Part shown: in pieces, positions 9,801 to 63,579 of the stretch
How positions within the stretch are numbered: position 1 is the first letter of the stretch
Layout: the number at the start of each line of letters is the position of its first letter
The notes under the pieces: generated by a model
The model's database searches: none
What the model saw: only the letters and a program-made list of their open reading frames with translations
What the model was told of the DNA's origin: nothing
DNA from: Dimorphilus gyrociliatus
Taxonomy: Eukaryota > Animalia > Annelida
Length of the DNA stretch: 64,000 nucleotides
Direction of reading: 5' to 3'
Assembly (NCBI GenBank): GCA_904063045.1
Contig: CAJFCJ010000024.1
Location: 62,001-126,000, forward strand
Made by a program: the position numbers and the translations under genes

Positions 9801-11698
9801 ATGACTCTGCCTATTTACAATTTCTATGGAAAACTGATGTAGTGGAAAGCTGGATAAAAGATAAGGAGACTCAAGTTGGTTCTGAAGATTATGGAAGAGA
9901 TCTGTCTTCCGTACAAACTCTTCTAACCAAACAGGAAACTTTCGATGCAGGTTTGCAAGCTTTCGAGAAGGAGGGAATCCAAACTATTACAACTCTAAAA
10001 GATCAGCTAGTAGAAGCAAATCATACTCAAACAATCTCTATTGAAAAGAGATACGAAGAAGTTATAAAACGTTGGAAACAACTTCTTAGCGATTCTGATG
10101 CTCGAAAGCAAAGATTGCTTAAACTAGCAGAACAATACAAACAAGTTGAAGACTTGTATTTAACTTTCGCAAAGAAATCTTCGGCATTCAGTTCGTGGTT
10201 CGAAAACGCTGAAGAAGATTTAACAGATCCAGTTAGATGTAATAGCATTGAGGAAATAAAAATTCTTCGTCAAGCTCATAAACAATTTAAGGACAGCCTT
10301 TCTGCTGCCGAACGCGACTTTCAAGCTCTGGTGGATCTTGATGGACAAATCAAGTCTTATGGCGTTGGGGCCAATCCTTACACTTGGTTCACTATGCAAG
10401 CAATGGAAGATACTTGGAATAACTTGCAAAAAATCATTAAAGACCGCGACAATGAATTAGAAAAAGAGCAAACTAGGTAAGTTTTGATATTAACTAAAAA
10501 GTACACTTCATAAAGCATGTGTTCTCTATTCCCTAGGCAAATAGAAAATGATGACCTACGTAGAAAATTTGCGGAGGAGGCCAACCAGTTCCACAAATGG
10601 TTGACAGACACAAGGTTATTTTCTATTATTTTCATGACATATTTATACAAAAAAAATAACGTTGGTGGTGATAAATGATCAAGGGACTTTTCATATCGAA
10701 AAATATGTACATTTTTTCAGAACTGAATTACTTTATTGGAAAGGGTTAATATTATTAGTGATGACTAACATATTAACAGTTTTCGTTTTATTTAATTAAA
10801 ATGAAAAAAGGACTGAGAAAATATTCGATACTATTTCAAAACTATTTGAACTATATTTTTTTCTTTAATTAATCAAAGAGCATTGCATGTTGAAAAAATG
10901 TGATGTGCTAGAGTTTTTCATTCTCTTCTCATGATGAAAACTTTATTAATTTGTAAATTCAATTTTAGATCGGCAATGATGGAATGCACCGGAACACTTA
11001 AAGAACAATTGGAAGCTACTAAACAGACGGCTGCTGATGTCAGAGCTCAGAGAAGTCAACTTAAGCGATTGGAAGATCTCGGTCAAATGATGGAGGAACG
11101 ACTCATTTTGGATAATCGTTATACAGAACATTCAACAGTGGGGCTTGCCCAACAATGGGATCAACTAGACCAATTGGGTATGAGAATGCAAAACAACTTA
11201 CACCAACAAATTCAAGCTTGCGACCAACATGGAGTTTCTGAAGATGCTCTACGAGACTGCATGATGTTATTTAAACATTTCGACAAAGACAAGTCTGGAA
11301 AATTGAGTCATCAAGAATTGAAATCGTGTCTTAGAGCGCACGGTTATAACATTAATGTTGCCGAAGAAGGTGAAGTTGATCCTGAGTTTGAAGCTATTCT
11401 AAATAGAGTAGATCCTAACCGTGATGGATATATTTCATTGCAAGGTTTTATTACCTTTATTATTGAACGAGAAACGGAGAATGTTCAATCTGCCGAAGAT
11501 GTTCTTAAGGCCTTTAAAGCTTTAACCTCCTCCGATAAACCTTTCATTACTTCGAAGGAATTATACTCGAATTTAACACACGAGCAAGCTTCATATTGCC
11601 GTCAACATATGAGGCTATACGTCGATCCAAGAACTGGAGAGCCGATTCCCGACCATTACGACTTCGAAGATTTCACTAGAAGTTTATATATTCAATAG
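3878..11698 (+). CDS. SPTAN1: Alpha-spectrin (non-erythroid type); exons 3878-10476, 10537-10614, 10969-11698
   Basis: About 20 spectrin repeats with conserved Trp, a central SH3 domain (ALYDY-like [18 protein letters not shown]...DWWKVE), and C-terminal EF hands. GT-AG junctions restore the sequence EQTR|[11 protein letters not shown]...DTR|SAMME. Confidence 0.97.
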
Positions 11699-16948: not shown

Positions 16949-18513
16949 ATGTCATTTCCTGAAGAAAGTATGGATAATAATGAAGGGGAAGCTTATCTCC
17001 CGGGTCAGCCAATGGAAGAAGGTGAAGAACTGGTTTATGACAAATCGGCTTATATACTATATCACAGAGCTCAAACTGGTTCTCCTTGTCTCAGCTTTGA
17101 TATTCTCTGTGCTGATGGAGATTCAAGTAATGTTGAAGAATTTCCACTTTCTATGTACATGGTCTGTGGAACTCAATCGGAAAAAGTTGGACAAAATAAA
17201 GTAATAGTTTGCAAAATGTCGAAAATAAACAAGAATAAGCAAGTGGACAGCGATGAAGAGAGCGACAGTGATAGTGATGATGACGACGATGATGAGGAAA
17301 ACGAAGAAAACCCAGAAATGGAAACTGTCTTTATGAAACATTTAGGTAGGGAATATAAGACGTCTTTTGTAAAACTAAGAGCAGTCTAATATGAAGAAAA
17401 AATGGGTCAATTTTATTATTAATACCACAGGGACAGTAAATCGAATTAGATGCAGTGGGAACATTTCCGGTAGAAGACTCGCTGCTTCTTGGTCTGAAAA
17501 AGGAAAGGTATATATCTGGGATATGCAACAACCTCTACAGGCGCTAAATGATTCAAGAGTAATGAACGAGATTGCAGGAAAAGACTTGAAGCCTATATTT
17601 TCTTTTAACGGCCATCAAAGTGAAGGGTATGGCCTTGATTGGAGTTCACTAGTACCTGGAAAATTAGCAACAGGAGATTGTAAAAAAAATATTCATATAT
17701 GGAAAATGAACGAAAGCGGATGGACAGTTGATCAAAGGGCATTCAATGATCACACCGATTCCGTAGAGGATATTCAATGGTTTGTAATTTTTTTCCATTG
17801 AAAATGTGTAGGGGAAGGATGTAGTAAAAAAAAAAAGAGCCTCTTAAAAGGATAATTTCTAAAAAATGTCACTACTTTTATCTAATAAACCGCTATTTCC
17901 ATAAGACTTACGTCTAGAAGATATAAATCCAATTACTTTGGATGCTAAAAATTGACATTTAATAAACGGAGGAATTCACATGTAAATTAATTTCAGGTCT
18001 CCTAACGAAGCGTCGGTGTTTTCTTCGTGCTCCGTAGATAAATCCATTAAAATTTGGGATGATAGAGCTCCTCCGAACAAAGCATGCATGATAACTGTAG
18101 AGAATGCTCATCAATCAGACGTCAATGTTATTCACTGGAATAGGAAGGAGCCTTTTATTATATCCGGAGGTGACGATGGCGTTCTGAATGTTTGGGATTT
18201 AAGGGAAATTTCTTCTAAACCTTCTCCTGTAGCTACATTTAAACACCATACAGGACCAATAACAAGTGTAGAATGGCATCCATCAGAAGGCTCAGTTTTT
18301 GGAGCAACGGGAGCGGATAATCAATTAACTCTTTGGGATTTGGCCGTTGAAAGGGACTCAAATGAAAAAGAACCAGAATGTCCACCTCAGCTTTTATTTA
18401 TTCACCAAGGTCAGAAAGAGATGAAAGAAATGCACTGGCATCCACATTTGAGTGGAGTGGTTATAAGTACTGCGTTGTCAGACTTTAATATCTTCAAAAC
18501 AATTAGTGTTTAA
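16949..18513 (+). CDS. GRWD1: Glutamate-rich WD repeat protein 1 (Rrb1 orthologue); exons 16949-17345, 17431-17779, 17997-18513
   Basis: [33 protein letters not shown], an acidic tract, WD repeats, and C-terminal [21 protein letters not shown]...FNIFKTISV. Junction phases are consistent. Confidence 0.96.
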
Positions 18514-28696: not shown

Positions 28697-31600
28697 ATGG
28701 ATTACGCTGAAGTTCCCAGCTCTTCAGATATGGGTGGAGGTTTAATGAGACCTCCAGAAAATAAAAAGAAGAAATCATCGGACAACGATGGACATGTAAA
28801 AGTGAAACCTCATTCGAATCTATTGCCCCCTTGTCGGGTTTGCAGTTCCGAAGCTTCGGGAATTCATTACGGTGTAAACACTTGCGAAGCTTGTAAAGTT
28901 AGTATAAAAATAAGAGACAATTTCATTCCTCAAACAATCAATTATTTGTAAAAGTAATTTTACATAAAGAAAAAAACTATTTCTGTAAAATTATAGAATA
29001 TATTATCATCACGTGATAATCTTTTATTCTAAAAAGAAAAAAAAAAAAGATTCTCTGACATGCTCTGACAAAGAGATTAAAATGCCACAAACTCCTTGAT
29101 ACGTTTTCCTACTTAAATATCAATTTTTACTTGAGGATAAATTCTTGATTGATTCTAAAAAAACATTCTAAAACTAAGCAAACAGAATAGAAAGCAAGAA
29201 ATAACATTTATATCTTATTATTAATTAATGTTAACCTGTTACTAATTTTCATATTCATTACCGTAATTACTTAAGAAAACGCTTTTAAATTGTTATATGA
29301 AAATTCCTAAAGAAATTACAATAGTTCTACTGTTGATGAGTATATGCTTTATAGATCAAGTAAATTTCTTTCTTTTTGTGTGTTCAATTGAATATTTCTA
29401 TTATATCAATATGCTTTTAAGAATAGAATAACTAGTACGAACGCCTAAATCATTAATAGTTCTAAAAAATGACCTTAAGATTGATAAGCATCTACTAGAG
29501 AGTCTAAGTGAATAAATATTTCCTTTTGGAATTTTTCCGCTTTATCTTGAATTTAAATTTAGTTTTATTTCTATTAATTGATAAAGAAAACGTGCGATAA
29601 ACTGAGAATTTAACTATAGCTGTTCATAGGACGATTGTTAAACGTATATGGAGTATTTTTAAATTATGATATAGGCTCTAAGTAAAGGGTGTTACTAACA
29701 ATAGGGTTGAAAACTATTTGAGTGCGTGAAAGTTGAGATAAACAAATCAACATATGATTAAAATGGTCATTAGTGGGTAAGTTGTGAAGGCAGTGATTTT
29801 AGGACAAAAGAAACGTTTTATATAGTTTGCTTATATAGTGTTTTAATTTTTTTTCCTCATGAATTAGTCAGAGAACTTTTCAATTTAAGAAAAATATTTC
29901 AAAGCTTGTATTAACGAAAGAAGTTAGAAGATTTAAGAAAATTCCAATATCTTTATAAATCTTTCTTTAAGCGAAAATGTATACTCTTTAATAATATATT
30001 ATATTTATTTATATATGTATGTATATTATACATATCTATATACATAGGTAACTTATAGGTTACGTCTAACATTCTAACAGCCAATATCTATCATTTATTT
30101 ATAAAGCTTATTTATTATAGCTTGCGTTCTTATATATCAAAAAAGAAATAGAAAATACATTATCTCTTAAGTTTTCCATGAAAGATTGAAAAAACAAAAG
30201 AGTACCATAGGCCTACTTTGTGCATACTTTATTATCAATATAGATAAAGGAACATTGGATATTGCTCATTAATAATAAATTGAAAACGTTATTCAAAAGA
30301 TTGTTAGCAATAGACAATTAAAAAGAATTATATTTGTTCTCCTCCAATCATTTTCTCCTTCCGGTTTCCCTTAGAGCCCGAAATAATCGAACCTTCCTTA
30401 AAAATTCTGATGGAATATTATATAATAGTTTTCTATATTTAAAGGAGAAAAGAGGGAAAAGAGTTTTACATTTCAATTAGTTTAATTTAAAAAATAGTAT
30501 GAACTTCATTTAATAAAAAAACCCATAAATATGATTATCTTAATTATTTATATTCTCTCATTAAAACTATTGAAAAAAGGTTATATAAAAATATATGAAA
30601 GTATGTCGCTTTATATGAATAATACATATATTTATCTTAAAAAGCAATTAATAAACGAACTGATTATAATTTATGATAAATTAAGTAATAGATTATTATT
30701 ATTTGCATATATTTTGTTTTTTTTTTTGTTTTTATTGAAAATTCTATATTAAACATAATAATTTATATTTTTTTCATTTAGAGTTTCTTTCGAAGAGCCT
30801 TGAAAAATACACCTCCAGAGTGCCTTGAGTCGAAACAATGCGAAATAACTTCTGGTAAATTACGTAGTGCTTGTACTGGTTGTCGTTTTAAGAAATGTTT
30901 AGATGTTGGAATGTCGAAAGAGAGGATAAAAACTGGCAGATATACAACCGAACAACGCAGAGCACATGTTGAAGAAGTAAAACTGCTAATGAAACAACAA
31001 CAAAAACCTGAAAATGAAGTTAATCCTATTGAATTGACCAATCATCAGGTTGAGCATATCATTCAAAATTTAACAACATCCTTTCTTCAAGTTGCTAAAG
31101 AATGTTATAGAGAAATGGCTGAGATGTCTCCCGAAGAGAATGCCATATATATATCACTAGAGATGGAAGATCAAATTGTTCAAAAGTTGTCGATGTTTGA
31201 GAAAGAAGTTAAAAATTGTATATATTTCGCGAAGCGAATACCAGGCTTCATTAATCTGCACGTTGAAGATCAAATTTCGTTGATTCGGGAAAACCGAATA
31301 GAATTCCGACTTTTATATATTAGACCTAAACTATCCGAAGATAAGCAGTTTTACATAATAACGAATATCGATTGGCATTGCACAAAAAAGGAAGTAAAAG
31401 ACTATTATCATTCCGACGAGGCTACCGAATGGTTATTTAAAACTACCGAGAGAATGAATGAAATATTCGAAGGAGACGATAAGCTAATCGCTATAGTTAC
31501 GGCTATTTGCGTTTTATCGCATGATAGATGTAAGAATTTAAGAGATATTCCAGCTATTGAGAGGATTGAAGAGAAAATGCTTCAGTGTCTAAGAACTATG

Positions 31601-31978
31601 ATGTCGAACCGGCAGATGGCGCATGTGTTTTCCTTATTAACAGATTTACGAATGATAACGGATCATACTAAAGCCTTAGAGCATTCGATACTAATATCGA
31701 ACGCCAAGGACGTCCAATTCCCTACACTGCTTAAAGAAACGTGGTATTCGGAAGGTATAAAGAGTTTACTACTTCAACCATTGAACGATGACGAATATCA
31801 GAGAGAGCAACAGAAACTTTCTGTTGAGATACCTGCAAATGTCCTATCGAAGTTGATTGACTTACAAAAAGCATCTAGGAATGGAGGAGATCAGGACTCA
31901 CCGAGCGCACACTCTATAGTCAAATCTCTCGCTCAGTTACCTGATCTCAGCAGTCTTGTTAATATTAACAGATCATAG
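28697..31978 (+). CDS. Nuclear receptor, divergent NR1-like orphan, about 465 aa; exons 28697-28897 and 30782-31978
   Basis: Two C4 zinc fingers (CRVC...HYGVNTCEACK|SFFRR...CLESKQC...CTGCRFKKC), C-terminal extension GMSKERIKTGRY, ligand-binding-domain signature FAKRIPGF..L..EDQI.L, and AF-2-like FPTLLKETW. Confidence 0.92.
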
Positions 31979-36863: not shown

Positions 36864-39800
36864 TAGTATATATATATATATATATATACAATAAATTTAT
36901 ATATACAAAAATGTGCATACAGCCTATTCCTAGCTAAGTAATTAGCCTTTTCGATCGGTCAAAAATAGAATAGCTGCCCAAAAGCAATAAGTCCAGTCGA
37001 TTGTAAAGAATTCTAAGTTTACCTTGTTTTTTTGTTATTAAACAACTAAACACTTAAAGCGTGTTCAGTGCAATTCTACATATTGCGACTGGTTCTAATT
37101 AAGGGTATTTTTAAAATAAATAATTAAAAATTTTAAACTAGTGTAAAAAAAATTGTTTGCAGAAAATAAAATGAAAATCAATTTTTTTTTTTTTGCATGG
37201 AGACAATTAAAATCCCCGGAAAATAAATGAGAAAAGCTCTTTCTTTGACAGAGTTAACCGTCATTGCATCACGCGGATGAAGCTTTAAATAAATGATTTT
37301 AAAAAAGAAAGCGATAATTTTTTTTCTTTCCTAAATTTTAATGTCAAGTTAACGAAAAATTGGATATTATTGTAAAACTGGACCCTAAAAAAACATACCT
37401 GATGTTGTAATCTGGTAAGGCCACGCAACCATAGAATCTGGCCTCGTTTTCCATCATCATCCATATCATACATGTCAACGCCTGCTCCTCCATCCATGCC
37501 TTGGGCGTTCGTATTTCTGCCTTCACCCCAGGTAAATAGTCCAGTGGGTATCACCGTAGACGGCACGGTAGTAACTAGCTGACCCCATAAGAGGCCGCCG
37601 ACGCCCAAGAAAACGCACCACAACCATTGATCGGGCGTTAGTGCAGCAGTCGACATAGCGACATCACCAAATTGTATAATTATTGTCTGGGCAATCATTG
37701 TAGTTATCCAGATCGAAACGAAGATCGGATTACTAAACAGACCCTTAAAAATGTTACGTTGATTATGAATCTTGCGGGCGTTGATTTCATTGAACAATGT
37801 CATCATGACGAAAGTATTAAATATGATGGTAAAATGCTGCGTAGGCGGTCCGCTGTTTTGTTCCCTACCGGAATCTATATCGAATAGTCTATCACCCACG
37901 AATAACAGGATCAGAATGACTGTAATTTGGTAAATAGCATGACCGAGAATGTTTTTCGTCATTGTAACTGAGACGAGCGGTTTAGTTCGGCCATATGGTT
38001 TCCTTTCGAGCAGTTCTTCCGTAGGCATTTCCGTAGCAAGGGCCAACGAGGCTAGAGTGTCCATAATCAGGTTCACCCACAACATTTGTATAGCCTTGAG
38101 TGGCGAATCGCTTATTATACACGCTCCCAAAAAGGCTACGATAACCGCGACAACATTGACCGTTAACTGAAATTGCAAAAATTTCGAAATAGAATCGTAA
38201 ACATTCCTTCCCCACATAACTGCCTTGACAATTGACGTAAAATTATCATCAGTAAGAATAATATCCGATGCCTCTTTAGCAACGTCTGTTCCAGCAATAC
38301 CCATAGCAAATCCGACATCAGCTTTTTTCAAAGCTGGACCATCATTAGTACCATCTCCAGTTACAGCAACTACTTCTCTATTTTCAGTAACTTTAGATTC
38401 TATTATACCTTGAACAAGAGTATGTTTATCAGTCGGTGATGATCTAGCTAAAACCCTCAAATCAGGCCATATTTTATCAATTAATTCTTGACGGACGTTA
38501 CCGTTTTCGTCACGTACCCTAGTATTAAATTCCTTTCCTTCGAGTACTAGAAATTGGTCGCCTGGTTTAATTATTCCACATTTAATAGCAATGGAGCGGG
38601 CCGTATTAACGTTATCACCAGTAACCATTCTAACGCAAATTCCAGAACGTTGGCATTTTCGAATAGCCTCAGGTACTTCAGGCCGAACAGGGTCTTCTAT
38701 GCCGACAATGCAAATGCAAGTCAATTCCGTTACAATCTTCGTATCTTCAGCCTCCCAATCTGGATCTGTACCATCCGATGGCATTCTAGCATCATTGCTT
38801 TGCATTTCAGCATCACGAGGCACGAAGTCCTTGTAAGCAACGCATATTGTTCTTAATCCATCGCAAGCCATGGGTTCAATAATATTTTTCACCATATGTT
38901 CTTGATCTTTTGATGAAAACGGTTTTATTTTTCCACCTGAAACAGAAAATTTGTATTGAATTTATTATGAAAATAACGAGGAAAGATGGCAATCGCTATA
39001 AAATTGCCGCAGGTACAGAATTAGGGCCAAACGTAAGACAACATCCGTATGCACATTTGTCAATAGTTTGGAAAGAGAAAGACAAGTTACAGTAAAATAT
39101 AAATCACCTTCTCCTATAATCCAGGTGCATCTTTTCAAAATAATTTCGCTAGCTCCTTTCGAAAATACGCGGTAGCCACCATTGTCCAATTTAACAACCG
39201 TAGACATTGATTTTCTTACGCTGTTAAATGTGTAGACTTTATACAATTTTTCTTCGGGGTATTCTGTTCTGACTTCATCATAAGTTGGGCCGCCTAAACT
39301 GTTGACATATCCAAGGAGAGCGCATTCAGTTTTATTACCCAATTGTTTTGGAAGTTCGCCGGGATTTTCAGGCTGAAGAACTTTAGAAGTATAGCCACAA
39401 TTTACAGAAATAGCTCTGGGCATAATTTCAGGTATGGGAGGTGGGAGAGCGTCCATTTTTGGTTGATTTTTATGATGTATGCCAGCTACAAAACTTTGAA
39501 CTACAGTCATCCGGTTTGTGGTCAATGTTCCTGTTTTATCCGAGCAAATGGCAGTGGCATTGCCCATAGTTTCGCAAGCGTCCAAATGTCTAACTAAATT
39601 ATTGTCGTCCATCATTTTCCTTACAGAATAAGCTAAGGCCAAAGTGACGGCGAGCGGTAAACCCTCAGGAACGGCGACCACAAGAACAGTTACTCCTAGG
39701 ATGAAGTATTTGATAAAATGTTTAAAATGTGCATTATTCCATGGATCATTCCTCATCACATAGGTTTTAATGCAAAACTTCACTATTAGAACGATAACGG

Positions 39801-41827
39801 TTACGACAGCGATAGCAGTACCAGCATAGCCAATTTGAATGGCCAATCGAGTAAGTTTTGCTTGAAGTACGGATTTCTCTCTTCGGCCAGATTGAGCAGC
39901 CGCTGGTGGTTGTTCTTCTTTTTGTTTCTCATCCGATGTTCCCTGAGCAGCTGGCCCATTTGCCTGATCAGCACCTTTCTCTGTTTTCTTCTTTGCCTCT
40001 TCCTCTTGAACGGCGCCAAGTAAAGTGAAAATCTGGCCAGCTTGCGAATACACGCCGACAGCTGTTACCACTATCTTACCAGAACCTTCCATAACGTGCG
40101 TTCCAGAATACAGCATTGGATCTTTGTCAACACCTTTCGTAACCTGGTGGGTTTCTCCAGTTAGAGACGATTCGTCCATTTTCAAATCGTTCGACTGGAT
40201 GACTATACCATCGGCAGGTAATAAATCTCCGTATTTCACCTGAAGGAATAACACACGATAAAGTAAATAAAACCGACAAGGTAATACTAGTATGAGAATT
40301 TACTGTCAAGCGTAATTAAAGGTGATAAAATTGGACGATTTAGCGAATAGATCGCTTATCTGTTTGTACCGAAAAGTTAGATAGATCGCGTTAAGAGAGG
40401 GGTCTCATTGCTAGCTGACAATCTTGTTATAGTTAAAAGAAAAAAACGATCGACTTTCTTTTTTTAGATTCTACCTTCAACTCAATCCGATCAACTGTAC
40501 ATTTAACTATTAATATCCCTCGGCAAAAATGAACTTCCTTGAGGTTGTGCGAAACTAGGAAAAAAGAGCTTCGGCAATAGCCGTCAGGGAGAACTTTGTG
40601 AGATGTTTATTGGCTATTTCCACGTATTGGACCTCCCGCCTAATTTTATCCTTACCTGAACAATTTCTCCGACCACAATATCCGACACTGGAATTTGAAG
40701 GTTTTCACCATTCCTTATTACAGCAAATTTGTGCTCATGCTCGATTTTGCTTTGCAATCCTCGGAATTGCTTCTCCTTTTGCCAGTCGTTTACTGCAGTT
40801 ACAATTACAACAACTATCACGGCAATTAAAATAGCTGCTCCTTCTATCCATTCTGCATGAGAATCGTGTTTTTCTTTCTTCCTACTACCTTCTGCAAAAG
40901 GAAAATTAATGCAATGAGTGAATAGACTATGCATGGAAGTAGCGTAAGTACTCTAGGCAGCTTTTCAATTATTTTTCCAAATACTTCTTCAAAATACCTA
41001 ATGTAAATACATTTAGAATAGCTATGCAAGATTTCACGTATCAGAAATAAGCTCTTCAGCTTTGTTATTCGTTTTAATCGCGAAAAAAGATTATTCACTT
41101 AAAAATCTCCTTATAATTAATTGCTTTTTAACATAAAGTAAATGTCTATATCTTCACAATACCATTTCACACACTCACTACTTGAATTCAGGAGTTCACG
41201 CTAACGGATAATATAGATAATAATATTGAACTATGGGTAAACGTCGCGAATTCTTCAAGATAAGAAAAACAAATACCGAAATTTTCTAAAAATAAATAAA
41301 ATATCGAACTATTTAATCGTTTAAGCGTATTGCATTAACGTGCTCGCCCATTGATAAGATATCACAGACTAGAAATCAGTACAAATATGCTAACAAAGAC
41401 TGTAACGGTTTTATTCATAGCTGAATATTTTACTACAATCTTAAATGAAGACAAATTTTAACGTACCTTCTCCAATTTCTGCAGGTGGCCGATAAAAACT
41501 CAGCCCAAGAGATATAACCGCCGCAACGATTAAAATTATAAGAGTAACATCCTGCAAAGCTTCCCATACTAATTGTAAAAAAGTTTTGGGCGGTTTTGGG
41601 GGAATAACATTGGAGCCAAAAGTTGCTCGTCTTGCTCGCAAATCCTCCGCTGATGCAGATATACCTTCAGTTGGGGAAGTTCTCAGTTTTTTGCACAATT
41701 GAATAACGCCACCAGCCTCTCCAACTTTATCAATAACATTCGAATCCCCCTTCAATTCCATCAGTTGGGTAAGTTCATTGACGGTGATACCAAAGTCTCC
41801 TGCCATGGTATCCATACCCCCCGTCAT
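35065..41827 (-). CDS. ATP2B: Plasma membrane Ca2+-ATPase; exons 41467-41827, 40656-40891, 39108-40239, 37399-38936, 35065-35277
   Basis: [18 protein letters not shown], phosphorylation motif [27 protein letters not shown], and calmodulin-binding region [15 protein letters not shown]|IRVVNAFR. Confidence 0.97.
35906..35952. repeat. (TA)n microsatellite interrupted by CTA (inverted copy of the 36841 repeat)
   Basis: Read directly as (TA)10-CTA-(AT)12. Confidence 0.85.
36435..36546 (-). other. Putative alternative PMCA exon at splice site C, encoding [28 protein letters not shown]-stop
   Basis: GC-richer island in an AT-rich intron. AG acceptor at 36547-36548 is in phase 0 with the ...LQHQ donor. 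Stop at 36460; GTATGA donor after 36435. Confidence 0.5.
36841..36888. repeat. (TA)n microsatellite interrupted by TAG
   Basis: Read directly as (TA)11-T-TAG-(TA)11. Confidence 0.85.
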
Positions 41828-44800: not shown

Positions 44801-46637
44801 CCACTGACCCAGCACCGTTCCTTTTCAAAGTAAACCGTGCACAGACCAGAGCAAACAAACCAAAACGACATTTTCGGTTGAAAATTCGATTTAATGCGCC
44901 GCGGCGACTCGTTCTACATCCCCGGTCGTCCCTAATCACTCTCCTTCATTTGCCTTTTTTTCTCGCTCTCTTTCTTCTGTCCCCATTTGATTTCTGTATC
45001 TGATACGTAATTACTCTTCTGAAACTATCGCCTGTTTTCTCTTTGCCTAAACAATTTTCAACTAATACCATTAGTTGAATTATAGGCATTAGCAAATTGA
45101 TTCAAAAACGGTATATTCTTGCGAAAATACGGTCAGACGGCCGAAAATTGCCTTTCCACATCGGCTGTCACTGCCGCTCTGCAATGCATCTTTTTTTTCA
45201 AAGAAATCGATAAGGCACTTATGCGTAATGATTGCTGCCTCGTGTCAATTTTTCCTCTCAATAGTTCGTAGACCGGCAGGACAATCGATAACACAGGACA
45301 CTTTTGCTCCTCTTTTTGGTCAAACCCTAGCTAAAGCTACAATTCGCCATCTCTTCAATGTTAAGCCTCTCATTCACAAGCTGACTTTTCGAAGCTGGCG
45401 AGCAAGGGATTAAAGGACCCGCACATTATGGAGAATAGACCACACCTCAGACAAATTATCGTCTTCTGTTCTATTTTTAAGAAAAAGGCAGACACCCGCT
45501 GTCGTGCATGTATGGTTACTCTGACGTCAATCTGAATAAGCTTTTATTGACTATTATAGCAGAATAATTGCTTTTTTTATGCCTACATTATTATACAGTT
45601 ATTCACTAGTCCCGCAAACTATCCCAAACTCTACATTTGGCTCAATTACAGTTAGACGGCAACGCTATAAATAGAGGAAAGATCCTAAAATAGACTTTCA
45701 CTAAAAATTCTATGAGTTTTCGTTAAGCAAACAGACATGGACAGATCGATATCTTTTCTCTATTATTTTGTACGCCAAGAATTCCCTTTCTATCCTCAGT
45801 CCTAATAAGATGAAAAAAAACCATTTCTACATTCAGAACATCATACTAAAATACATTCTAACATGCCAATTAATTCTAATACACGAATCAGAAAGAGTCC
45901 GATTCGATAGCTTAATAAAACGAAAAATCGAAAAAGAAATGTAATGTTCATTTTATATGGTGGCCATCTTTTACAGAGCACTAGCATACAAACCGTTTTA
46001 GAGCGAAATATTCCGCTTAAGGATTAGTCAAATCCAATCTTCTCGCTACCGCCGACGCCTTCCACTACAATGTTCCGATTTTAGCGGAAATGTTGAGAAT
46101 TGCATGTAAAATTCAGAGGATTTATTGAAAAATCGTCAAGCCGGCCCCTCCGTAATATCTCAACGTCACGTGACTTATAGTCGCGCATGCGTAGTATCTA
46201 ATTAAGATCACAGCCTATAAGAGCAAAAGTAGCGTAAGTATAATCAAATGGTTATGTTTATTAATTCGCTCTGTACTATTATAACGTCATTGGTGGAATT
46301 TCGGCGCTAAAAATAGTTTAAACAATGAGTCGAATAAACAGTCATTTATATTTGTAATATAAACAATAAATTAGCGACAGAGGAATGAGTTATACTGGCT
46401 GAGATCCTCTCTGATTATGAGTTTTATTTCCCTCTACATGAAACAATGCTAAACATTTTGCTTACGTTTGCAAAAAATCGATCTCAGCCTATTTGAGGCT
46501 GTGAAAATAAAATCATTGATCAGAACAAAACAAAATTCCCGACTCTTTAATTAAGACAATTTCACGGTTGAACGATCACAAGGATAGAAAGAAGCATGAC
46601 CGATAGATGGCGTGTAACAAATTTAAAAAAAAAACAA

Positions 46638-47208
46638 TTAAACGCCACTAATAACACTAGACGAAAGAGTTTTGTAGGGATTAAGAACGCAATTCGGATC
46701 AAACAATGCTTTAATTCGCTTCATTAATTTCACTGCCGAAGTCCCCTTACTGTAACGGATGCATTCGTTCTTGTGAAATCCCAAACCTGCATAGAAGAAA
46801 GTCCCTAAACTGAAAATCGAATATTTTGGCTTATTAAATTCCCAAACCGTGTTCGGCGCTCACGCTTCCATTTAGCTGGGCGACCGACTCGAAAACAAAA
46901 ATTTCCAGTGCTGACTTTACATCCTTTTCGAATTTTTTAGACACAATATTTAAGTGAAGATTACCTTTTTTTGGAATAACCAAATATCTGTAATCAATGT
47001 TCAATCGATTGCTAAAAGGATGCTATTACATACCATCTCCAACATGACCATATCCCATGCAATATAAGACAGGATAGCCCTTCATTAGCTCCGTAACGGA
47101 TTCAGTGACTTCTGAAAATTTCGCAACTGGAATTGAGACATCAAACTTATATGTGTAGCCGTCTTGTTTACATGCTTCGGCAAGTCTCTCCCTCAGCGCC
47201 CATAAGGC
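46638..47208 (-). CDS. D2HGDH: D2HGDH 3' cassette B (canonical C-terminus); exons 47034-47208, 46848-46964, 46638-46786
   Basis: Hand translation: ALWALRERLAEACKQDGYTYKFDVSIPVAKF...GYGHVGD|GNLHLNIVSKKFEKDVKSALEIFVFESVAQLNGSVSAEH|GLGFHKNECIRYSKGTSAVKLMKRIKALFDPNCVLNPYKTLSSSVISGV-stop. No internal stops, all junctions GT-AG. Minus-strand AATAAA at 46423-46428. Confidence 0.9.
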
Positions 47209-48890
47209 CTATATTAGAGAAAAATAAGATCAACTAATGACATGTATACCACTTAGTCAATTCAAAACAATTTGATAAAGGACCAATAAAATATATTTCT
47301 CTACTTAGCAAAAAAAATAAATTCAATGGCCGTCTCATAACTCCTTTTACCCATCTAACTTCTTTTCCTCCAAACAATAATTTCATAATTATTCAAATAT
47401 ACTTGCTGTTGGTATCAGCCTTCGATCTTATAAATAATCTGTAGGCCTTCATTATAATAGTTTTTATCGTTTTGTTTGAAGTGGATAAACAATAAGACTC
47501 AATTAAGGATGCATGTATAGTTTGAAATAGATCAATCTTTTAATTTACAACTCTTGTGTTCTTAAAAGCAAGCAAAACAATTTTTTAATGAATTCATTTT
47601 TTAAAATATATTCAAATATCTTAAAATAGAATTAATGGTGAATTAAAGCAAGTACTACTAACCGCATCGGATGAGAATATTTTTTTTATTGTTATTGAAG
47701 AATACAGAAATAATGATTGTAAACTTAACAGTTTAGTCAAATATTATATAAACTAACATTCAAAGCCCCTTTTTAGACATGTGCCAAAACCAGAAATGGT
47801 CTAATGAAAAACATCTAAACATGCTAATTATGCATCTTTTTCTGGAGAAAGGTCATCTTCATTTCTATATATTCAATATAATAAAAAAAATCTTGATCAA
47901 TGTTACAACGTATAACATAATTATTTAATAATTTTTATCGAATATATCGCAAAATTTTGCGTTATAGATCGTATAGTTATGGATATTGTTAAAATATACA
48001 TTATCATTATTTATCATTTCAGTCCATTTTTCCTTCAAGTATTTATCAAGTGAATTTCTATATTACTCTCAATATAACTAACGACATAGCGACAAACGCG
48101 TATGTAGGCCTTTATCGGATTGCTGGTTATTTATAGATGACTCATGAAATAAATAAAAAAGGAAACAAGATGAAGAGAAGGAGAATGGAAGGGAAAAAAA
48201 CTGATAATGATAAGAATAATAATGAAGGAATTTTTAGGAAGTAGAGTATTAGAGAGAAAAAGAAGATAAAATATTATAATTTTTTCCCACAGTTTAAGGT
48301 TAAAAAAAACTATTTTAATTTGTTTCATCAAACTGATGTAGATTTACTCTCGTGATAATAGATTCTTACGTCTTTATGAAATTCTATACCTTTATTAAAA
48401 GTAATATTTTTTTGTGTTTAATGTTAAAATGATAAAAGTAAATGAGGAGAGAAAAGAGAGAAAAGAAAAAAAAAAGCTATCCTTATATGTATAATCCTTT
48501 GATTTAGTTAGGTAAATAATAAAAAGTAAAGAGGAGTTTAGTGCGTCTATCCTTGTGTTCTTTTGCTTTTTTTTTCTTATATTTTTTATTTGGGTTATCG
48601 AATTATCTTATTAAAACATTTTGATGTCTATTACCTTCAAAGCGAACAGCTTGTTTACACTTCGATGAATATTTAATAAACATACATATTTTCCGACGGC
48701 TGCTGTTCAATTATTTGTAATCTAGGTCATTGCTATATTTATCCTGTCGTATCGAGATATCTTTTGATAAAGCGTAATAAAGCAATATCGAAGATGTATG
48801 TGCGTCATTATATTATAGGATTAGGGATGAAGGAAGCGGAAAATAAAAGAAGTAAAAGAAAAATAGGAATAAAAAAGTCATATATGCAAC

Positions 48891-49062
48891 CTTGTCCGAA
48901 AATACAGAAAAATTTTGCATGATGAAACTTATTCGTGACGATCTGAACGACAGAGTCGAATTGCTGAACCGGAATAGCAATGTCATATTTAAAGTCGTAA
49001 CAGTCGCTTCTAACTGTTTTCGTAAGCGCTTCTTACAGTCGCGCCCTAAATTTATTGAATAT
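48891..49062 (-). pseudogene. Degenerate D2HGDH 3' cassette C (pseudo-exon)
   Basis: After a TTTTAAG acceptor, phase-0 translation is IFNKFRARL*EALTKTVRSDCYDFKYDIAIPVQQFDSVVQIVTNKFHHAKFFCIFGQG. It aligns to ALWALRERLAEA...YKFDVSIPV...GYGH. In-frame TAA at 49033-49035. Confidence 0.7.
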
Positions 49063-51232
49063 CTTAAAAGCCAAAAATAAAAATAAAAGAAATTGCGCAT
49101 TTGGCATAAAATCATATTGAATGAACCGTATATACTGTACACGATATAAATAAATTGTCATAATATCGGCTTATTACGTTCTAGCATGCATTAACATAAA
49201 CTCAATAGTTAACTAAGTAGCAGTAAATGATATGTAATGGGTACGACAATGTCATACACCGATTTCAGAATTTCATTAGGATCAATCAACTCCTTAAGTC
49301 CTTCGATTAACTTTACTGTTCGCTCATACCTTCAATAATTCAATAACGGGCTTGTGCCTGTTTTTCTCTTATTTCAATCATACTTTGTATATGCATATAT
49401 AAAGTAAATTCAGCGTCTACAAACTATTTTGTATTAATAAGAGGAGTATTCCATTGATAAAAAGGAGGAATTAGTAGATTCATTCAAGAATTTATAGAAT
49501 TGTAATGATAATTATTATAGTTTTTTTTTCTAAAGTCATACCAGAAAAAATTATAGATATACTGTATATATGTTAGAATGCGTATGAAATATAAATAGCA
49601 GTCTATAATTCTTATTTAAATGTTAATGAATATGCTCATTGCTCTTAACCATTGTTTAACATTGACACCATATACAATTCTAAGGTAGGATAAGTTAATG
49701 ATACACTGGTCTAAAGCGAAGCAATACATCTACTATATCATATAGGGTGTATAAATAATACATGTAGCATATATCTACGACAATAATCAAAATCACCTTG
49801 GGGTAATTTTCCTATCAATGTAAAGGAAATAATATATAGTTTTTCTTAGATCAACAACTTAGATATTATTATGCAATCCTCTCTTTTTCATCTTTAACAT
49901 AACGTTCTTTAAACTGCATCTGTCAAATATAATATTTCATTTCCTATTGACCCTTTATTGAAATATTTGAATGACAGATCATATCAGATTTTTATAGAAC
50001 AATGTTTTTTTAACAATAAATTAATAAAGAAAGATTTTCTCTATAGTTAAATTTAGGTTAGAAAAAAAGTATGGTAAAATAAATAGAAATACGTCAAGGA
50101 TTCTGATTAATCCTTTATTAAAAATCCAGTGGGATAAAATATTGCGAAAATCGTTAATTGGTAATGGAAAATTTGTGTGATTCGTGTCTTTCTCTTTATG
50201 TATTTTTTTTTTACCTTTCTACCTATATACGTATATAATTCATATACATTTATTTATTTATTTATAGTCATCTACTATACCCGTTCTCTTTCTCTTTTTT
50301 CTCCTTATAGGCAGTATTTTCCATTCTACTACTTTCTATCGTAGTCATCCTCTTTTATCAAAGTTTGATATTGTAAAATGAGCACTTTCAAAAGAAAAAT
50401 TTTACTAATAATTATGATTAAAAAGTAAAAACAAAACGGAATACTTCAATCCAACAAAAAAAAGGTATTGATTTCCGAAAGAAAAATTTTTCTTTATTTA
50501 CTTCAGAGAGATAATGAGAAGAAGTTCTAGACACCTAACAGCTTAATAAAATAGACGGTCTACTATAAACTCTGCTTAAGAATACTTTCTCAAAAATGAA
50601 TTTCGATAGCTTTTGCTTCGCCCTTTTCGCTTCGGTTAACGCTACTTATTTTTCATTGCGTAGAACAAATACCAACGTAATGATATACCAACAGCAAGCG
50701 AAATAACGATATAATAGTTTACAGAACGTGAACAAACATCACGACTTGGAGTAATGCCCTTTTAGGGGTGAGTGAGGGGAAAAGGGGATTTAAAATTCCA
50801 TTATTACGTATAAGACCCTAAAGTCTTTTCCATTAAATTCCACCAACTCATTTATTTTTCCTGTTTTTTTTTGGAGTAGAACAGCTGGGATAAAGAGGAT
50901 GCTAAGGACGATTACCAATTATAAGACATTCAAACCAATTTAGATGAAAAACTTAATCATTTTTATTCGAGGCGATATTCAATAGAAGTCAAGACTATAT
51001 TCCGCGCAATATAAATTCTATTTCGATTGTCGTGACCTTTAAGTCATTTTGTTGATTTCACACCTAAAAATCTTTAGTTTAAAAGTTCTTATTCTATTCA
51101 TTGTTTTTTTTAAGTAGAAGAATATCTTGTGTGATTATATATTAGTTATTGGAGAACGAATAAAATTTGTGTTATACGCTAATGCAAGGCAGAGGAAGTT
51201 TAACGTTTGGAGGCCGTTTTTTTTTAATATGT

Positions 51233-53195
51233 TTATGGAAGAGTCTTGTATGGATTCAAAATTCCTTTAGGATCCATATGATCTTTAAGTCTCTCCATTA
51301 AGTCGACGGCCGTTTTACTTTTCGATAAGTTGATGTGCTTGTTCTTTTGTGTACCTAAACCATGTTCCGCACTAATACTCCCCTTCTTCTCTGCCACCCA
51401 TTCAAAGATAAATGGTTCTAATAATTCTTGGACCTCTTTTGAATTTTCCCATTCCAATTCAACGGTAAGGTGGATATTTCCTAAATTCCACATATAGGAA
51501 TTTTGAAAAAGATAGTATGTACGTATATTTTTCGCCTTTTTTTGTACGCCTACAGCTTTTACGTAGGCTTTTACTAACCGTCTCCCAAATGTCCAAAACC
51601 GCTTACAGACGAAACAAGATTTCCGAGACGGCGTCTCAAAATTTGCGTCAATTCGTCGAACAATCGAACGCTTAAGCTGAAGTCGTAGGCCATAGACGCC
51701 TTCGGAGAGGATCCGCGGTCTGCTATGCGTTCTCGTAGTTGCCATAGCGACTGTCCGGTAGCGTTTAAATCAAGGATCCTTTGCACTTTTAACCCTACGT
51801 TAACCTCATCCCACCATCCCCCTACGTAATTTAAGCTTCATATTTTATATACTTACGTTGACTTTTGATGGTTCAGTAGCAAGCACTCCATCAGCAGCGA
51901 ATCCGCCATCTAGAGCATTGTTCAAGAAGGTATTCAATTTCTCCTCGTCATGCGATGCATTAGAACCCGACGTCTCAATTAAACAATAGAAGGGATATTT
52001 GTCTAGAGGACATTGGAGGCCTAGATTTTGTCTAACCATCTCCATGGCTGTGGAGTCCATATATTCAAAAGCGGATAGAATCTCCCCCAATTTCCCCTTG
52101 GCAACATCTAACGTCTCCAATACACTTTTGTAGTCCGGGCAACCTGTATTTATTTTTTAAGACAGTAATAATTTCCGCAGAGGGTGGATTGTTTAAAACT
52201 TAACCAAGTAAGGCGACGTTAACACTTTTAGGCTGTTTGGCACAAAGGATCGACACTTTCGTTACAACACCTAAATTTCCTTCCGAGCCTATAAATAATT
52301 GCTTCAAATCATATCCAGTATTATCTTTCCTAAGTGTAGACAAGCAATCGATTATTTCCCCGTTAGCCAACACCTGCAATGGTTTAAAAGACGAAAAATT
52401 TTTAATATTATATTACAGAGAATTTCCATACAGCTTCTAAACCCAAAATGGATCCGTGTAAAGATCCATAACGTAAGAGTCGGAGACCGCCAGCATTCGT
52501 CGAAACATTTCCCCCTATCTGGCAGGAGCCCTTAGCCCCCAGGTCATAGGGAATTATATAATCAAATTCCCTCGCGTACTCGTCCAACTTCTCTAATATA
52601 CAACCGGATTCACAAGTAAGGACGCCTGAGAAAGCGTCGAAATTAATTATTCGATTCATTCGCTCAGTGGACAAGATAACCTCGTCGAAAACTGGTACGC
52701 TACCCCCAACTAAGCCCGTATTACCTAGATAATTTGAAGATATTTAGCAACGGAAATACATGGTTAATCGGGAACCAAACCTCCTTGTACTGACACAGCT
52801 ATTTTTCTCTCATTACAATACCCCAATATTTTTGATATCTCTTCTGCAGACTTGGGCCTAAGAACTAGGTCGCTTTTACCTAATTAACCCGTAATTGCTT
52901 TATTGTGTAATTCTTAGTGTAAATAGTACTAACCTCTGACAGTTTTCAGCCAATCTGTATTGTAACCACTTAAGTCCTCGTCCTTCGAACTCAGTATTTG
53001 ACCCGAATTCGTCAAAATCTTTTTAAAAGCTTCTATATCATAATCCTGCAAAATTGCAAAGTCCCCCCGTTTTAAATGAGGATATCTGTCACTGGTGTAC
53101 GGAATATTTTCCAACCGACGACTAGTCGTTAAAGACCTAGTTATGGTGAGCGATAGTAGACGGTTTTTATAGATTTTCATCAAATATCTATTCAT
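51233..53195 (-). CDS. D2HGDH: D-2-hydroxyglutarate dehydrogenase-family FAD oxidoreductase. Shared exons: 52934-53195, 52781-52879, 52432-52724, 52205-52373, 51857-52143. Cassette A exons: 51579-51750, 51233-51480.
   Basis: Presequence-like N-terminus, [103 protein letters not shown]. Confidence 0.95.
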
Positions 53196-61192: not shown

Positions 61193-63111
61193 CTAGTCAA
61201 AGGGATTTAAACTCCGAGGAACAGGAGTTAAAGTATGGCAAAGAGATTTCATCCAATTGTCACCATTTATAATTGATGTTGAAGCGACTATGTATTCGGC
61301 AGGAGCATCATCCAATTGAGAGAGAAATCTAATTTTTTGGTAGAAAGTACATATTTAATGATTATTTACATAATATTCTTTTTAAATATTGGACTGTACC
61401 TTAAAGCTGCAATTTCAGCAAAAGTTACACCACCAATAAAAAAGACTAGAGTACACTTTGGCTGGGAAGATGAGAAAGAGCTTGGATTATTTGCAACTTG
61501 AACTTCTTGAATTGTTGGTCCAGGTATATGTGACAAAACATCTTCAATACTCCTCCAACCGGGTCTATGAAGAAATTGTGCCAGTCTAACCGTTAAAGGA
61601 GCATAACCACTATACGTATAAGATATATCTTTAGGATTTTGAATGTTAACATCTTCAACAGTTAATTTTAAAGTTTTCCTCAATGTTGAATACGTTTTTA
61701 AATTTGATGTATGAACTTTAATTAGGCCAGCTCTTTCTAAATTTTGTAGAGTTATAATATTCTCAAAGCCATAGGCTAGAAGAATATCTCGTTTATATTG
61801 TTCAAATACTTTCGGTTTTAATCCATTTGAACAATAAGATTGAATACAAATTAAACGTAGAACTTTATTTAGAGACACTCTCTTAGCTATATACTTTTCA
61901 ATAATTTCATGTGGCTTATCCGAATGAGAACCCATATAAAATTGTTGTTGAACGTCCAAACATTCTATGAAATCATGAGAATGAACTTCCTAAAACATTT
62001 TAATTTATTACTCAATGATTCTTGATGATAACTTTTAAATATAATAGTAATTAACAATGCCTACCTGATGGATAATGTGAGCAATGTTCGTATGTAAACT
62101 TAAAGAAGACTTAACGGCTTGTATATGTGGTAATTTCATAACAAAATTTTTCATATCTTCTACAGTTTTAGCTTCGTGTCTTTCGTTACTTTGTGACGTT
62201 AATAATTTGGCTTGTTTACTCAAATAAGCTCCAACGCTATGAAAGTTTTTATCTCTTATATCCGAAAAAACTTTGTCACCAGAATTTAAAATGACTTTTC
62301 CCTTATCACCACCTGATGGAAGGCGAACGATAGTATTGTTAATCGATAGTATTTCGTCGATTAAACCTTCATAGGTTAATTGATTTAGTAAAGGACTAAG
62401 AACGTCAACTGATCTGTCAATGAGAAGTAGGTTATCTATTTGACTTTTTCCAGAATCGCTTATGTTATATTCCCTTGTCATTCTTTTTAGTATATCCCAT
62501 ACATGACCAGCACTCGCTCCCTTGCCATAAACATTTGGAATGGTACCATAAAGTTCTTGTAGAGTCATCAAACTCTTAGCTACGTAATGGAGAGATTTAT
62601 AGTCGTTGTTTATAAAGCAATCGGCAAAACAAGACGAATAGTCTAATGACAAGAGGTCGTAATCTAAAGGTAGCATTTCCAGAGGAAAATCTCCTACGTT
62701 TGTGAAGCTTTCAAGAGCTCGTAGTTCTTCCAATTTTCTAATACATAATTCGTTTTTTCTAGGAACGAAGAACAAGTGATAAGACACCTCTTCAAAAGGG
62801 TTGGAGGTATCGTTGCCAAGTATGCATCTGGCAATAGTTTGCATGAGTGAAATATTTGGACGTACGAAAAAAATAATGTTCCTAACAGCCGGTCCTGATG
62901 GGAGGGGTGCTCTCAGCGACCACATAATGATTACCTCGCAATCTTTTAGAAGAGTGTTTTCGGCAATAAGATCGAAGGGACCCATGAGAGACTCGTCCCA
63001 AACTATAGCTTTTGTCCCTTCGCAACATTCCAAACATCTTTTTAATCTTGAACGATAGGACTCACGAAGTTTTGAAACATTTATTCTTCCAACACTCAGA
63101 TGGGTCGCCAT
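61193..63111 (-). CDS. VPS33A: Vacuolar protein sorting 33A (Sec1/Munc18 family); three exons, probable start MATHLS at 63111
   Basis: MATHLSVGRINV...KAIVWDE.LMGPF.LIAE, LLIDRSVDVLSPLLNQLTYEGLIDE, YSGYAPLTVRL, LVFFIGGVTFAEIAALR|FLSQ, ending PRSLNPFD-stop. Confidence 0.95.
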
Positions 63112-63579
63112 GTTTTTGTCATGTGACACTGTTACTCAGCCATTGACAGCGCTCATACAGAATTCAACCAGCTGAAGTACAAAAAAGCTCAGACAGAATC
63201 ACGCGATGAAAAATTTGTAACGGGTTCGCCTTCCTCTTCGCTTTTCAACTGACTAAATCATTAATAGAAACCAGGTTACATAATGAACTTTGAAAAAAAT
63301 CTCATTTTTTTAATATGAAACCATAAACAAAGTGGTTATAAATTATATCTATTCAATACTTGTAAACTTGTTAAAACCTTTGCCGAACTTCTATTTCTAA
63401 AAAAGTTCTTTTCTTTTTGAGATTTATGCTTAAAATATATGTGGGTCATTACTGTGAATGACCTTGCCACAGAGATACGTGAAGATCAAATAAAAAGCCG
63501 GTATCACATTGGATGCGAGACTTGATTGGTAAAGAACTATATTTTATTTAAAATATAGTTGAAACTTACCAAATAAAAG

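Follow-up and report, generated by a model that had tools for sequence, protein, structure and literature searches.

A D2HGDH gene with two alternative 3' ends in the annelid Dimorphilus gyrociliatus, one of them with an altered substrate pocket

The DNA considered here is a stretch of 64,000 nucleotides (nt), which we call the window, from contig CAJFCJ010000024.1 (positions 62,001 to 126,000) of the assembly GCA_904063045.1 of the miniature marine annelid Dimorphilus gyrociliatus. On its minus strand lies a gene for D2HGDH, an enzyme that is studied as the remover of the oncometabolite D-2-hydroxyglutarate (D-2-HG), and whose distal lysine has been reported as strictly conserved. In the worm, five common exons are followed by either of two sets of terminal exons, cassette A or cassette B, and it is the difference between these two ends, and what it might mean for the substrate that each isoform accepts, that concerns us.

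The gene and its two 3' ends

Table 1. Positions of the exons and related features. Window coordinates unless marked L002, which refers to the locus of Schistocerca gregaria (CM043598.1).
Feature	Position	Strand	Remarks
Common exons 1-5	53195-52934, 52879-52781, 52724-52432, 52373-52205, 52143-51857	-	370 amino acids; all junctions GT/AG, frame unbroken
Exon 6A (cassette A, first exon)	51750-51579	-	R386, Ala at T390, Ala at K401, Phe at Y432, H434; weak purine-rich acceptor tract
Exon 7A (cassette A, terminal)	51480-51233	-	H441, Thr at N443, E475, H476; stop TAA 51235-51233; PF02913 167-247, 71.9 bits
Probable 3' untranslated region, isoform A	51232-50940	-	AATAAA at 50967-50962; putative poly(A) site
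Weak terminal-exon-like relic	49346-49266	-	decayed; in-frame stop
Exon-6-like relic	49032-48934	-	decayed; FKYD motif present, in-frame stop just upstream, no GxGH
Exon 6B (cassette B, first exon)	47208-47034	-	R386, K401, Y432, H434 all canonical; strong polypyrimidine acceptor tract
Exon 7B	46964-46848	-	H441, N443, E475, H476
Exon 8B (cassette B, terminal)	46786-46638	-	stop TAA 46640-46638
Locust variant exon	L002:72062-72230		LYTCD, GFGHLG (T, F)
Locust canonical exon	L002:72279-72447		VYKYD, GYGHVG (K, Y)

The common exons (Table 1) encode a basic, mitochondrial-type N-terminus, a FAD_binding_4 domain (FAD, flavin adenine dinucleotide) and the first half of the FAD-oxidase_C cap, and Pfam recognises PF01565 and PF02913 positions 13-103 in them. 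Either cassette then supplies PF02913 positions 106-248, the half of the cap in which all the residues that touch substrate or metal are found, from R386 to H476 in human numbering. Cassette A is 139 amino acids (aa) long, has AG/GT splice sites throughout and is in frame with exon 5; cassette B comprises three exons and 146 aa. Both are homologous tandem 3' terminal sets that follow exon 5 in phase 0, each with its own stop. Over their full length they are about 43% identical (36% in exon 6 and 52% in the rest, that is, 7A against 7B plus 8B, as counted from the pairwise alignment), and tblastn joins them with expectation values (E) of 1e-22 to 2e-25. An intron in codon G438 is common to A and B, and a second intron, which splits codon G477 immediately after H476, is found in B only. 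Because of the intron position that they have in common, we rejected the idea that cassette A is a retro-copy; a 170-aa open reading frame (ORF) at 51233-51745 was also rejected as a gene, since upstream of exon 7A it runs out of frame. Between the cassettes lie two decayed relics, picked up by tblastn with cassette B (relic matches at E 6e-05 and E 0.21), and the D2HGDH 3' end has therefore undergone several duplications.

Are both ends really used? For this we turned to assembled contigs of four public runs (X1, X2, X9 and X3), mapped onto 46600-52450; the runs are labelled RNA only by guess, and it is the intron-less joints at canonical sites that show processed RNA. Contig 14 of X9 (925 nt) runs from exon 4 through exon 5 into 6B, 7B and 8B, and its joint between exon 5 and 6B leads from 51856 to 47207, skipping 4648 nt (51855-47208) with GT..AG on the gene strand. 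On the side of cassette A, the X1/X2 contig, followed past 51750, enters a stretch of 30 letters, 25 of them identical to the end of exon 5, with the translation ILATEPSKIN, and the 98-nt intron between 6A and 7A (51578-51481) is absent from X9 contig 16 and from X1/X2 contig 4 (733 nt). The X1/X2 contig also extends beyond the stop of cassette A to 51008 and for 63 more letters, so covering the 3' untranslated region. The splice between exons 4 and 5 is present in contigs of all four runs, that between 6B and 7B in contigs of X3 and X9, and that between 7B and 8B in X9 contig 14. Since RNA contigs carry both the joint from exon 5 to 6A and the joint from exon 5 to 6B, both isoforms are made, and it is well supported that this one gene truly has A and B as its alternative 3' ends. 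No joint from A to B was found among the assembled contigs of the four runs, although contigs cannot show absence.

As for where these transcripts come from, X1, X2 and X9 give the same per-exon difference counts and are therefore probably one lineage, 5-12% diverged from the reference, and X3 is a coral metatranscriptome whose contigs are 95-99% like the window. More generally, the coral and marine metatranscriptomes (X3-X8) hold spliced transcripts 95-99% identical to the D2HGDH gene, and worms of D. gyrociliatus or a close relative seem to live in the sampled corals or aquaria.

The GenBank annotation of the locus has a 509-aa gene that consists of the common exons and cassette A, so that isoform A is the sole D2HGDH annotated, and a separate gene of 158 aa, P0114, in which a 12-aa mini-ORF (ATG at 47385) is spliced to a cassette B that is 100% identical to ours (window 46638-47385, minus strand; L001:8001-8749). 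Taken at face value, these two genes would put A and B in separate transcription units, with the full gene ending in A, and B as an independent small gene or pseudogene, and some RNA contig coverage just upstream of 6B (47409-47593) would sit well with such an arrangement. We consider it very improbable indeed, given that X9 contig 14 runs from exon 4 through 8B with a GT..AG joint, that a 158-aa product would have no FAD domain and that 6B is in phase with exon 5. Because RNA contigs join 6B to exon 5, P0114 as a gene of its own is probably a mis-annotation, and in practical terms this means that the worm's annotation lists the non-canonical isoform only, with the canonical cassette split off as an orphan gene.

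The substrate pocket in cassettes A and B

The human enzyme provides the frame of reference for the residues that differ. In human D2HGDH, H434, H441 and E475 are the zinc (Zn) ligands, H476 is the base and R386 binds C1 of the substrate, and the C5 carboxylate at the other end is bound by K401, through a salt bridge, and by T390, Y432 and N443 (PMC7801405). Mutation of K401 abolished activity, and mutants of T390 and N443 lose 2.6-3.4 fold; among D2HGDH orthologues K401 and N443 are described as "strictly conserved" and Y432 as "highly conserved", and D-lactate dehydrogenases and GlcD have other residues at the four C5-carboxylate sites (PMC7801405).

We mapped the worm residues by HMMER/phmmer alignment to human D2HGDH (PDB 6LPN, 6lpn_A), in which the chain number plus 46 gives the published numbering (H388 becomes H434 and K355 becomes K401). 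When phmmer is run over all PDB chains, 6lpn_A is the best match for 6A (E 4.9e-07), 7A (E 6.3e-19) and 6B (E 1.1e-11), and both cassettes have what marks the D2HGDH group (EC 1.1.99.39), namely the Zn triad H434/H441/E475, the base H476, R386 and human D2HGDH as nearest structure. Both also have the same two Pfam domains as the human enzyme once joined to the common exons, and both differ from it in having Ala at T390. At the remaining three C5-carboxylate sites the cassettes part company: isoform B keeps K401 (in YKFD), Y432 (GYGH) and N443 (NLHLN), whereas isoform A has Ala (MAYD), Phe (GFGH) and Thr (NIHLT) and so lacks this feature of D2HGDH. The divergence of A is centred on exon 6A, which scores 16 bits to PF02913 versus 38 for 6B; exon 7A, at 72 bits, is on a par with 7B plus 8B. 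The worm thus has two alternative C-terminal halves, and no such cassettes are described in the structural paper on the human enzyme (PMC7801405).

Much of this had been anticipated in an earlier reading of the same DNA, the original prediction, which had placed cassette A at 51233-51750 and, working by hand with human numbering, had found R386, H434, H441, E475 and H476 in both cassettes and K401, Y432 and N443 in B, with Ala, Phe and Thr in their place in A. The location is confirmed by the two exons of cassette A, both sets of residues are borne out by the alignment to human D2HGDH, and the roles that had been given to them agree with PMC7801405 and PMC10589216. That alignment had been made without gaps, and here the key sites and the numbering were right but the absence of gaps was not: 7A has one additional residue between N443 and E475, and 6A has a compensating insertion/deletion pair, which leave the key sites unmoved.

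A further suggestion, that cassette A has converged on mammalian LDHD, a dehydrogenase of hydrophobic D-2-hydroxyacids (PDB 8JDC; PMC10589216), fared less well. There are certainly likenesses, in the family, in the glycolate subsite and in the missing distal Lys and hydrogen-bonding groups of subsite B, the hydrophobic subsite that LDHD builds from Val101, Trp351, Ser365 and Ile407 (PMC10589216). However, the LDHD residues are Trp at the position of T390, small ones at those of K401 and Y432 and Ile at that of N443, where cassette A has Ala, Ala, Phe and Thr, so that the K401 position alone fits. Exon 7A, moreover, matches D2HGDH at E 6e-19 and LDHD at E 6e-04. Convergence on LDHD is accordingly not supported, and cassette A has branched recently from D2HGDH and is no orthologue of LDHD.

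Relatives of cassette A in insects

We looked for close relatives of cassette A in several ways. An exhaustive search with 7A among 50% cluster representatives found no close A-type relative (the best match is 62% identical), a word search among fragments of 98-311 aa found none either (best match 63% identical over part of the query), and among database fragments there were no isoform pairs with an identical common part. What both the 7A search and the fragment search did return was many cassettes without K401. The nearest full-length representative is a protein of Galleria mellonella (P0023). A word search with it listed arthropods only, without getting as far as the protein of the worm itself; it gave 120 named arthropod proteins, about 20 of them without K401.

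Just two alignment columns, K401 and Y432, separate the 98 canonical arthropod cassettes from 19 that are without K401. All 98 canonical cassettes have K in the first column and Y in the second, and the variants listed have T, A, V or C in the first and, in 16 of the 19, F in the second; cassette A of the worm, with A and F, belongs to the same pattern. N443 behaves otherwise: several beetle enzymes with K and Y intact have Q, S or T there, and so the Thr at this site in cassette A is not diagnostic. The three concerted changes of the original prediction thus come down to two, K401 and Y432, that tell the classes apart, and a third that does not.

Like cassette A, the insect variants couple the replacement of K401 by a small residue (T, A, S, C or V) with that of Y432 by Phe, they keep the catalytic core, and the exon from R386 to H434 lies within the duplicated unit. 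The genetic arrangement differs from one group to another. In the locust S. gregaria there are two 169-nt, same-phase copies of the R386-to-H434 exon, one variant and one canonical, 48 nt apart, with one last exon in common (Table 1); judging from the DNA layout alone, they are likely to be a mutually exclusive pair, with exclusivity that is likely enforced sterically. Thus in the locust this exon alone is duplicated and the last exon, with N443, is common, whereas in the worm the duplication takes in the whole 3' end, stop and putative poly(A) site included. In Lepidoptera, the variants are tandem paralogues of the entire gene, diverged over their full length, where the worm has duplicated 3' cassettes only. 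In stick insects the cassettes follow one another within single gene models: that of Bacillus rossius (P0307) has a canonical and a K-to-T, Y-to-F cassette in series, and that of Timema cristinae (P0262) a canonical cassette followed by one with K to S and Y to H and another with K to T and Y to L. Such serial-cassette models probably arose as artefacts of gene prediction across tandem alternative exons, so that several insect annotations appear to chain mutually exclusive cassettes. The clam (Mercenaria) locus has a single canonical exon, and its contig ends right after the gene.

Two minor observations belong with these insect genes. Models with 2-5 serial copies of the cassette or exon (P0262, P0318, P0307, P0001 and P0304) include two of Timema (845 and 592 aa), one of B. 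rossius (648 aa) and one of Operophtera brumata (624 aa), the last with five near-identical copies of exon 6 that may be an assembly artefact. The lepidopteran canonical/variant pairs P0258/P0302, P0257/P0295, P0265/P0298 and P0263/P0297 are 50-85% identical along the greater part of their length, with a 30-residue window near the C-terminus at 100%, and most pairs have a further 100% identical window at or near the end; these identical windows suggest gene conversion between the tandem copies.

In the cassette trees, the insect variants group with the canonical cassettes of their own order, which suggests either repeated origin or homogenisation by gene conversion. It is tempting to go one step further and propose, tentatively and with rather less than even confidence, that the change of K401 to a small residue together with Y432 to Phe is a recurrent and possibly convergent switch that would mark a second substrate class in animal D2HGDH, reached by dinophilid terminal cassettes, by orthopteroid exclusive exons and by lepidopteran gene duplication. 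The recurrence of this pair of changes in insects is what is new here. We found no literature account of D2HGDH exon duplication, of its mutually exclusive splicing or of the function of the insect variants, although our coverage of the literature was incomplete and this is a weak sign of novelty. Tandem exon duplications with exclusive or alternative-terminal use are well known in general (PMC9013439, PMC9741552), and the worm gene resembles them in its homologous same-phase exons and in a protein body that stays the same while a functional surface is replaced; it differs in that an enzyme's entire substrate and metal site is swapped and in that exclusivity comes about through alternative last exons, not through an internal cluster.

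How one gene might make two enzymes

Putting these strands together, we think it probable (we would say at roughly 0.6) that this D2HGDH gene makes two mitochondrial, FAD- and metal-dependent D-2-hydroxyacid dehydrogenases, a canonical isoform B and an isoform A with an altered pocket. The isoforms would have one promoter and one FAD module in common and differ at the 3' end, where each cassette would provide the second half of the cap domain and so exchange the whole substrate and metal site. The exon 5 donor might be joined to the near, weak acceptor of cassette A, with polyadenylation about 290 nt past the A stop, or it might instead be joined to the strong acceptor of cassette B, across 4.6 kb. 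Because the 6A acceptor is purine-rich and that of 6B pyrimidine-rich, and because A has its own stop, an AATAAA and contig coverage of its 3' untranslated region, the outcome may well be a contest between a weak proximal acceptor plus polyadenylation and a 4.6-kb splice.

Isoform B, with its canonical pocket, should be a D-2-hydroxyglutarate/D-malate dehydrogenase. Isoform A is predicted still to oxidise D-2-hydroxyacids, since the site for the glycolate moiety (R386, H434, H441, E475 and H476) is kept. Its distal pocket, however, lacks the Lys that makes the salt bridge and the hydroxyl of the Tyr and has Thr for Asn, and with the pocket altered in this way isoform A should lose its preference for D-2-HG and D-malate and take a 2-hydroxyacid with an uncharged tail. 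We regard the loss of D-2-HG preference as well inferred from the residues, and a changed substrate scope as the best-supported reading of isoform A, because it is without K401, and in the human enzyme mutation of this Lys does away with D-2-HG oxidation. The original prediction of a neofunctionalised enzyme, which would act on D-lactate or hydrophobic D-2-hydroxyacids, is thus partly supported, namely as regards a change in substrate scope, for which the kept catalytic residues, the lost K401 and the recurrence in insects all speak, but not as regards its likeness to LDHD.

Several points weigh against two distinct enzymes, and they deserve to be set out together. The RNA support is drawn from assembled contigs rather than from raw reads of the reference strain, and the lineage behind them differs from the reference by 5-12%; nor can contig depths rank the relative levels of the isoforms. 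The cassette trees leave the phylogeny of the cassettes open, for neither A and B as sisters (approximately unbiased test, p-AU 0.36) nor A together with the insect variants (p-AU 0.22) is rejected. Thr in place of N443 occurs in enzymes that are otherwise canonical, and cassette A has a Lys four residues ahead of the K401 position (SPKASMAYD) that might partly stand in for K401.

The last two points bear on the idea that isoform A is still mainly a D-2-HG dehydrogenase, in which other residues (the Lys at -4, the Thr at 443) compensate and the cassettes differ in kinetics, regulation or partners. All of the metal-binding and catalytic residues are kept, the T390 and N443 mutations of the human enzyme cost just 2.6-3.4 fold (PMC7801405), and in beetles N443 varies among enzymes that are otherwise canonical. 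We nonetheless think this unlikely: loss of K401 kills the human enzyme and the residue is reported as strictly conserved (PMC7801405), it is K in every one of the 98 canonical arthropod cassettes, and the insect variants at K401 and Y432 have no such upstream Lys with which to make good its loss.

Could cassette A, rather than encoding an enzyme with a different substrate, be a duplicate that is in decay or has no catalytic function, is transcribed by virtue of its place within the gene, and gives a protein that is inactive or merely regulatory? It does have the longest branch in the cassette trees (1.5-1.7, versus 0.7-1.4 for B), exon 6A alone falls under the Pfam threshold, and decayed cassette relics adjoin it. 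We rate this as less likely still, for its frame is intact, its splice sites are canonical and, of the nine core motif positions, all but the distal-pocket ones are kept. Comparison with the diverged X1/X2/X9 lineage points the same way: 6A has 9 substitutions in 173 nt (5%) and 7A 25 in 248 nt (10%), no more than the common exons (10 in 172 nt of exon 4, 32 in 284 nt of exon 5) or cassette B (15 in 126 nt of 7B, 14 in 95 nt of 6B). None of these exons has a gap, so that cassette A is free of indels over 421 nt, against 103 substitutions and 31 gaps in 1321 nt of intergenic sequence. By these substitution counts, which are not a test of the ratio of nonsynonymous to synonymous rates (dN/dS), cassette A is at least as well kept as B in the diverged lineage. 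Its k-mer depth in the X1/X2 contigs, indicative only, is about half that of the common exons, and A is the isoform that the genome annotation picked. Finally, its substitutions fit the recurrent insect pattern, not random decay, and because the change of K401 to a small residue with Y432 to Phe recurs in alternative exons and paralogues of insects, function is the better explanation of cassette A than decay.

A natural pair of isoforms with one FAD module and different substrate sites is a ready-made experiment on specificity in this family, and a two-residue change that insects have reached by three genetic routes suggests a real second substrate that has so far not been sought. If the two-residue switch does mark a second substrate class, many protostomes would carry a second mitochondrial D-2-hydroxyacid dehydrogenase activity, hidden within what is annotated as 'D2HGDH'.

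Some smaller observations concern the divergence of cassette B and the surroundings of the gene. In X9 contig 14 (46609-47207) the divergence of cassette B is very uneven, with 1 difference in 170 nt of 8B beside 15 in 126 nt of 7B and 14 in 95 nt of 6B, and the final 78 nt of 6B differ so much that they do not align; gene conversion, rapid evolution of 6B or a chimeric contig could be the cause. The next gene downstream of cassette B encodes a plasma-membrane-type Ca2+-ATPase (37285-40254, minus strand; L001:13560-16749), and its annotation includes Cation_ATPase Pfam domains. In another part of the window, an uninterrupted ORF of 2200 aa at 3878-10480 (plus strand), with spectrin-like repeats and an SH3-like stretch, and an EF-hand C-terminal-like ORF at 10931-11698 (plus strand) look by eye like an alpha-spectrin-like gene that is almost intron-free, which would explain the strong G and A skew there. 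Other ORFs, again by eye, are nuclear-receptor-like (30800-31978), WD40 (16949-18513) and Sec1/Vps33-like (61366-63129).

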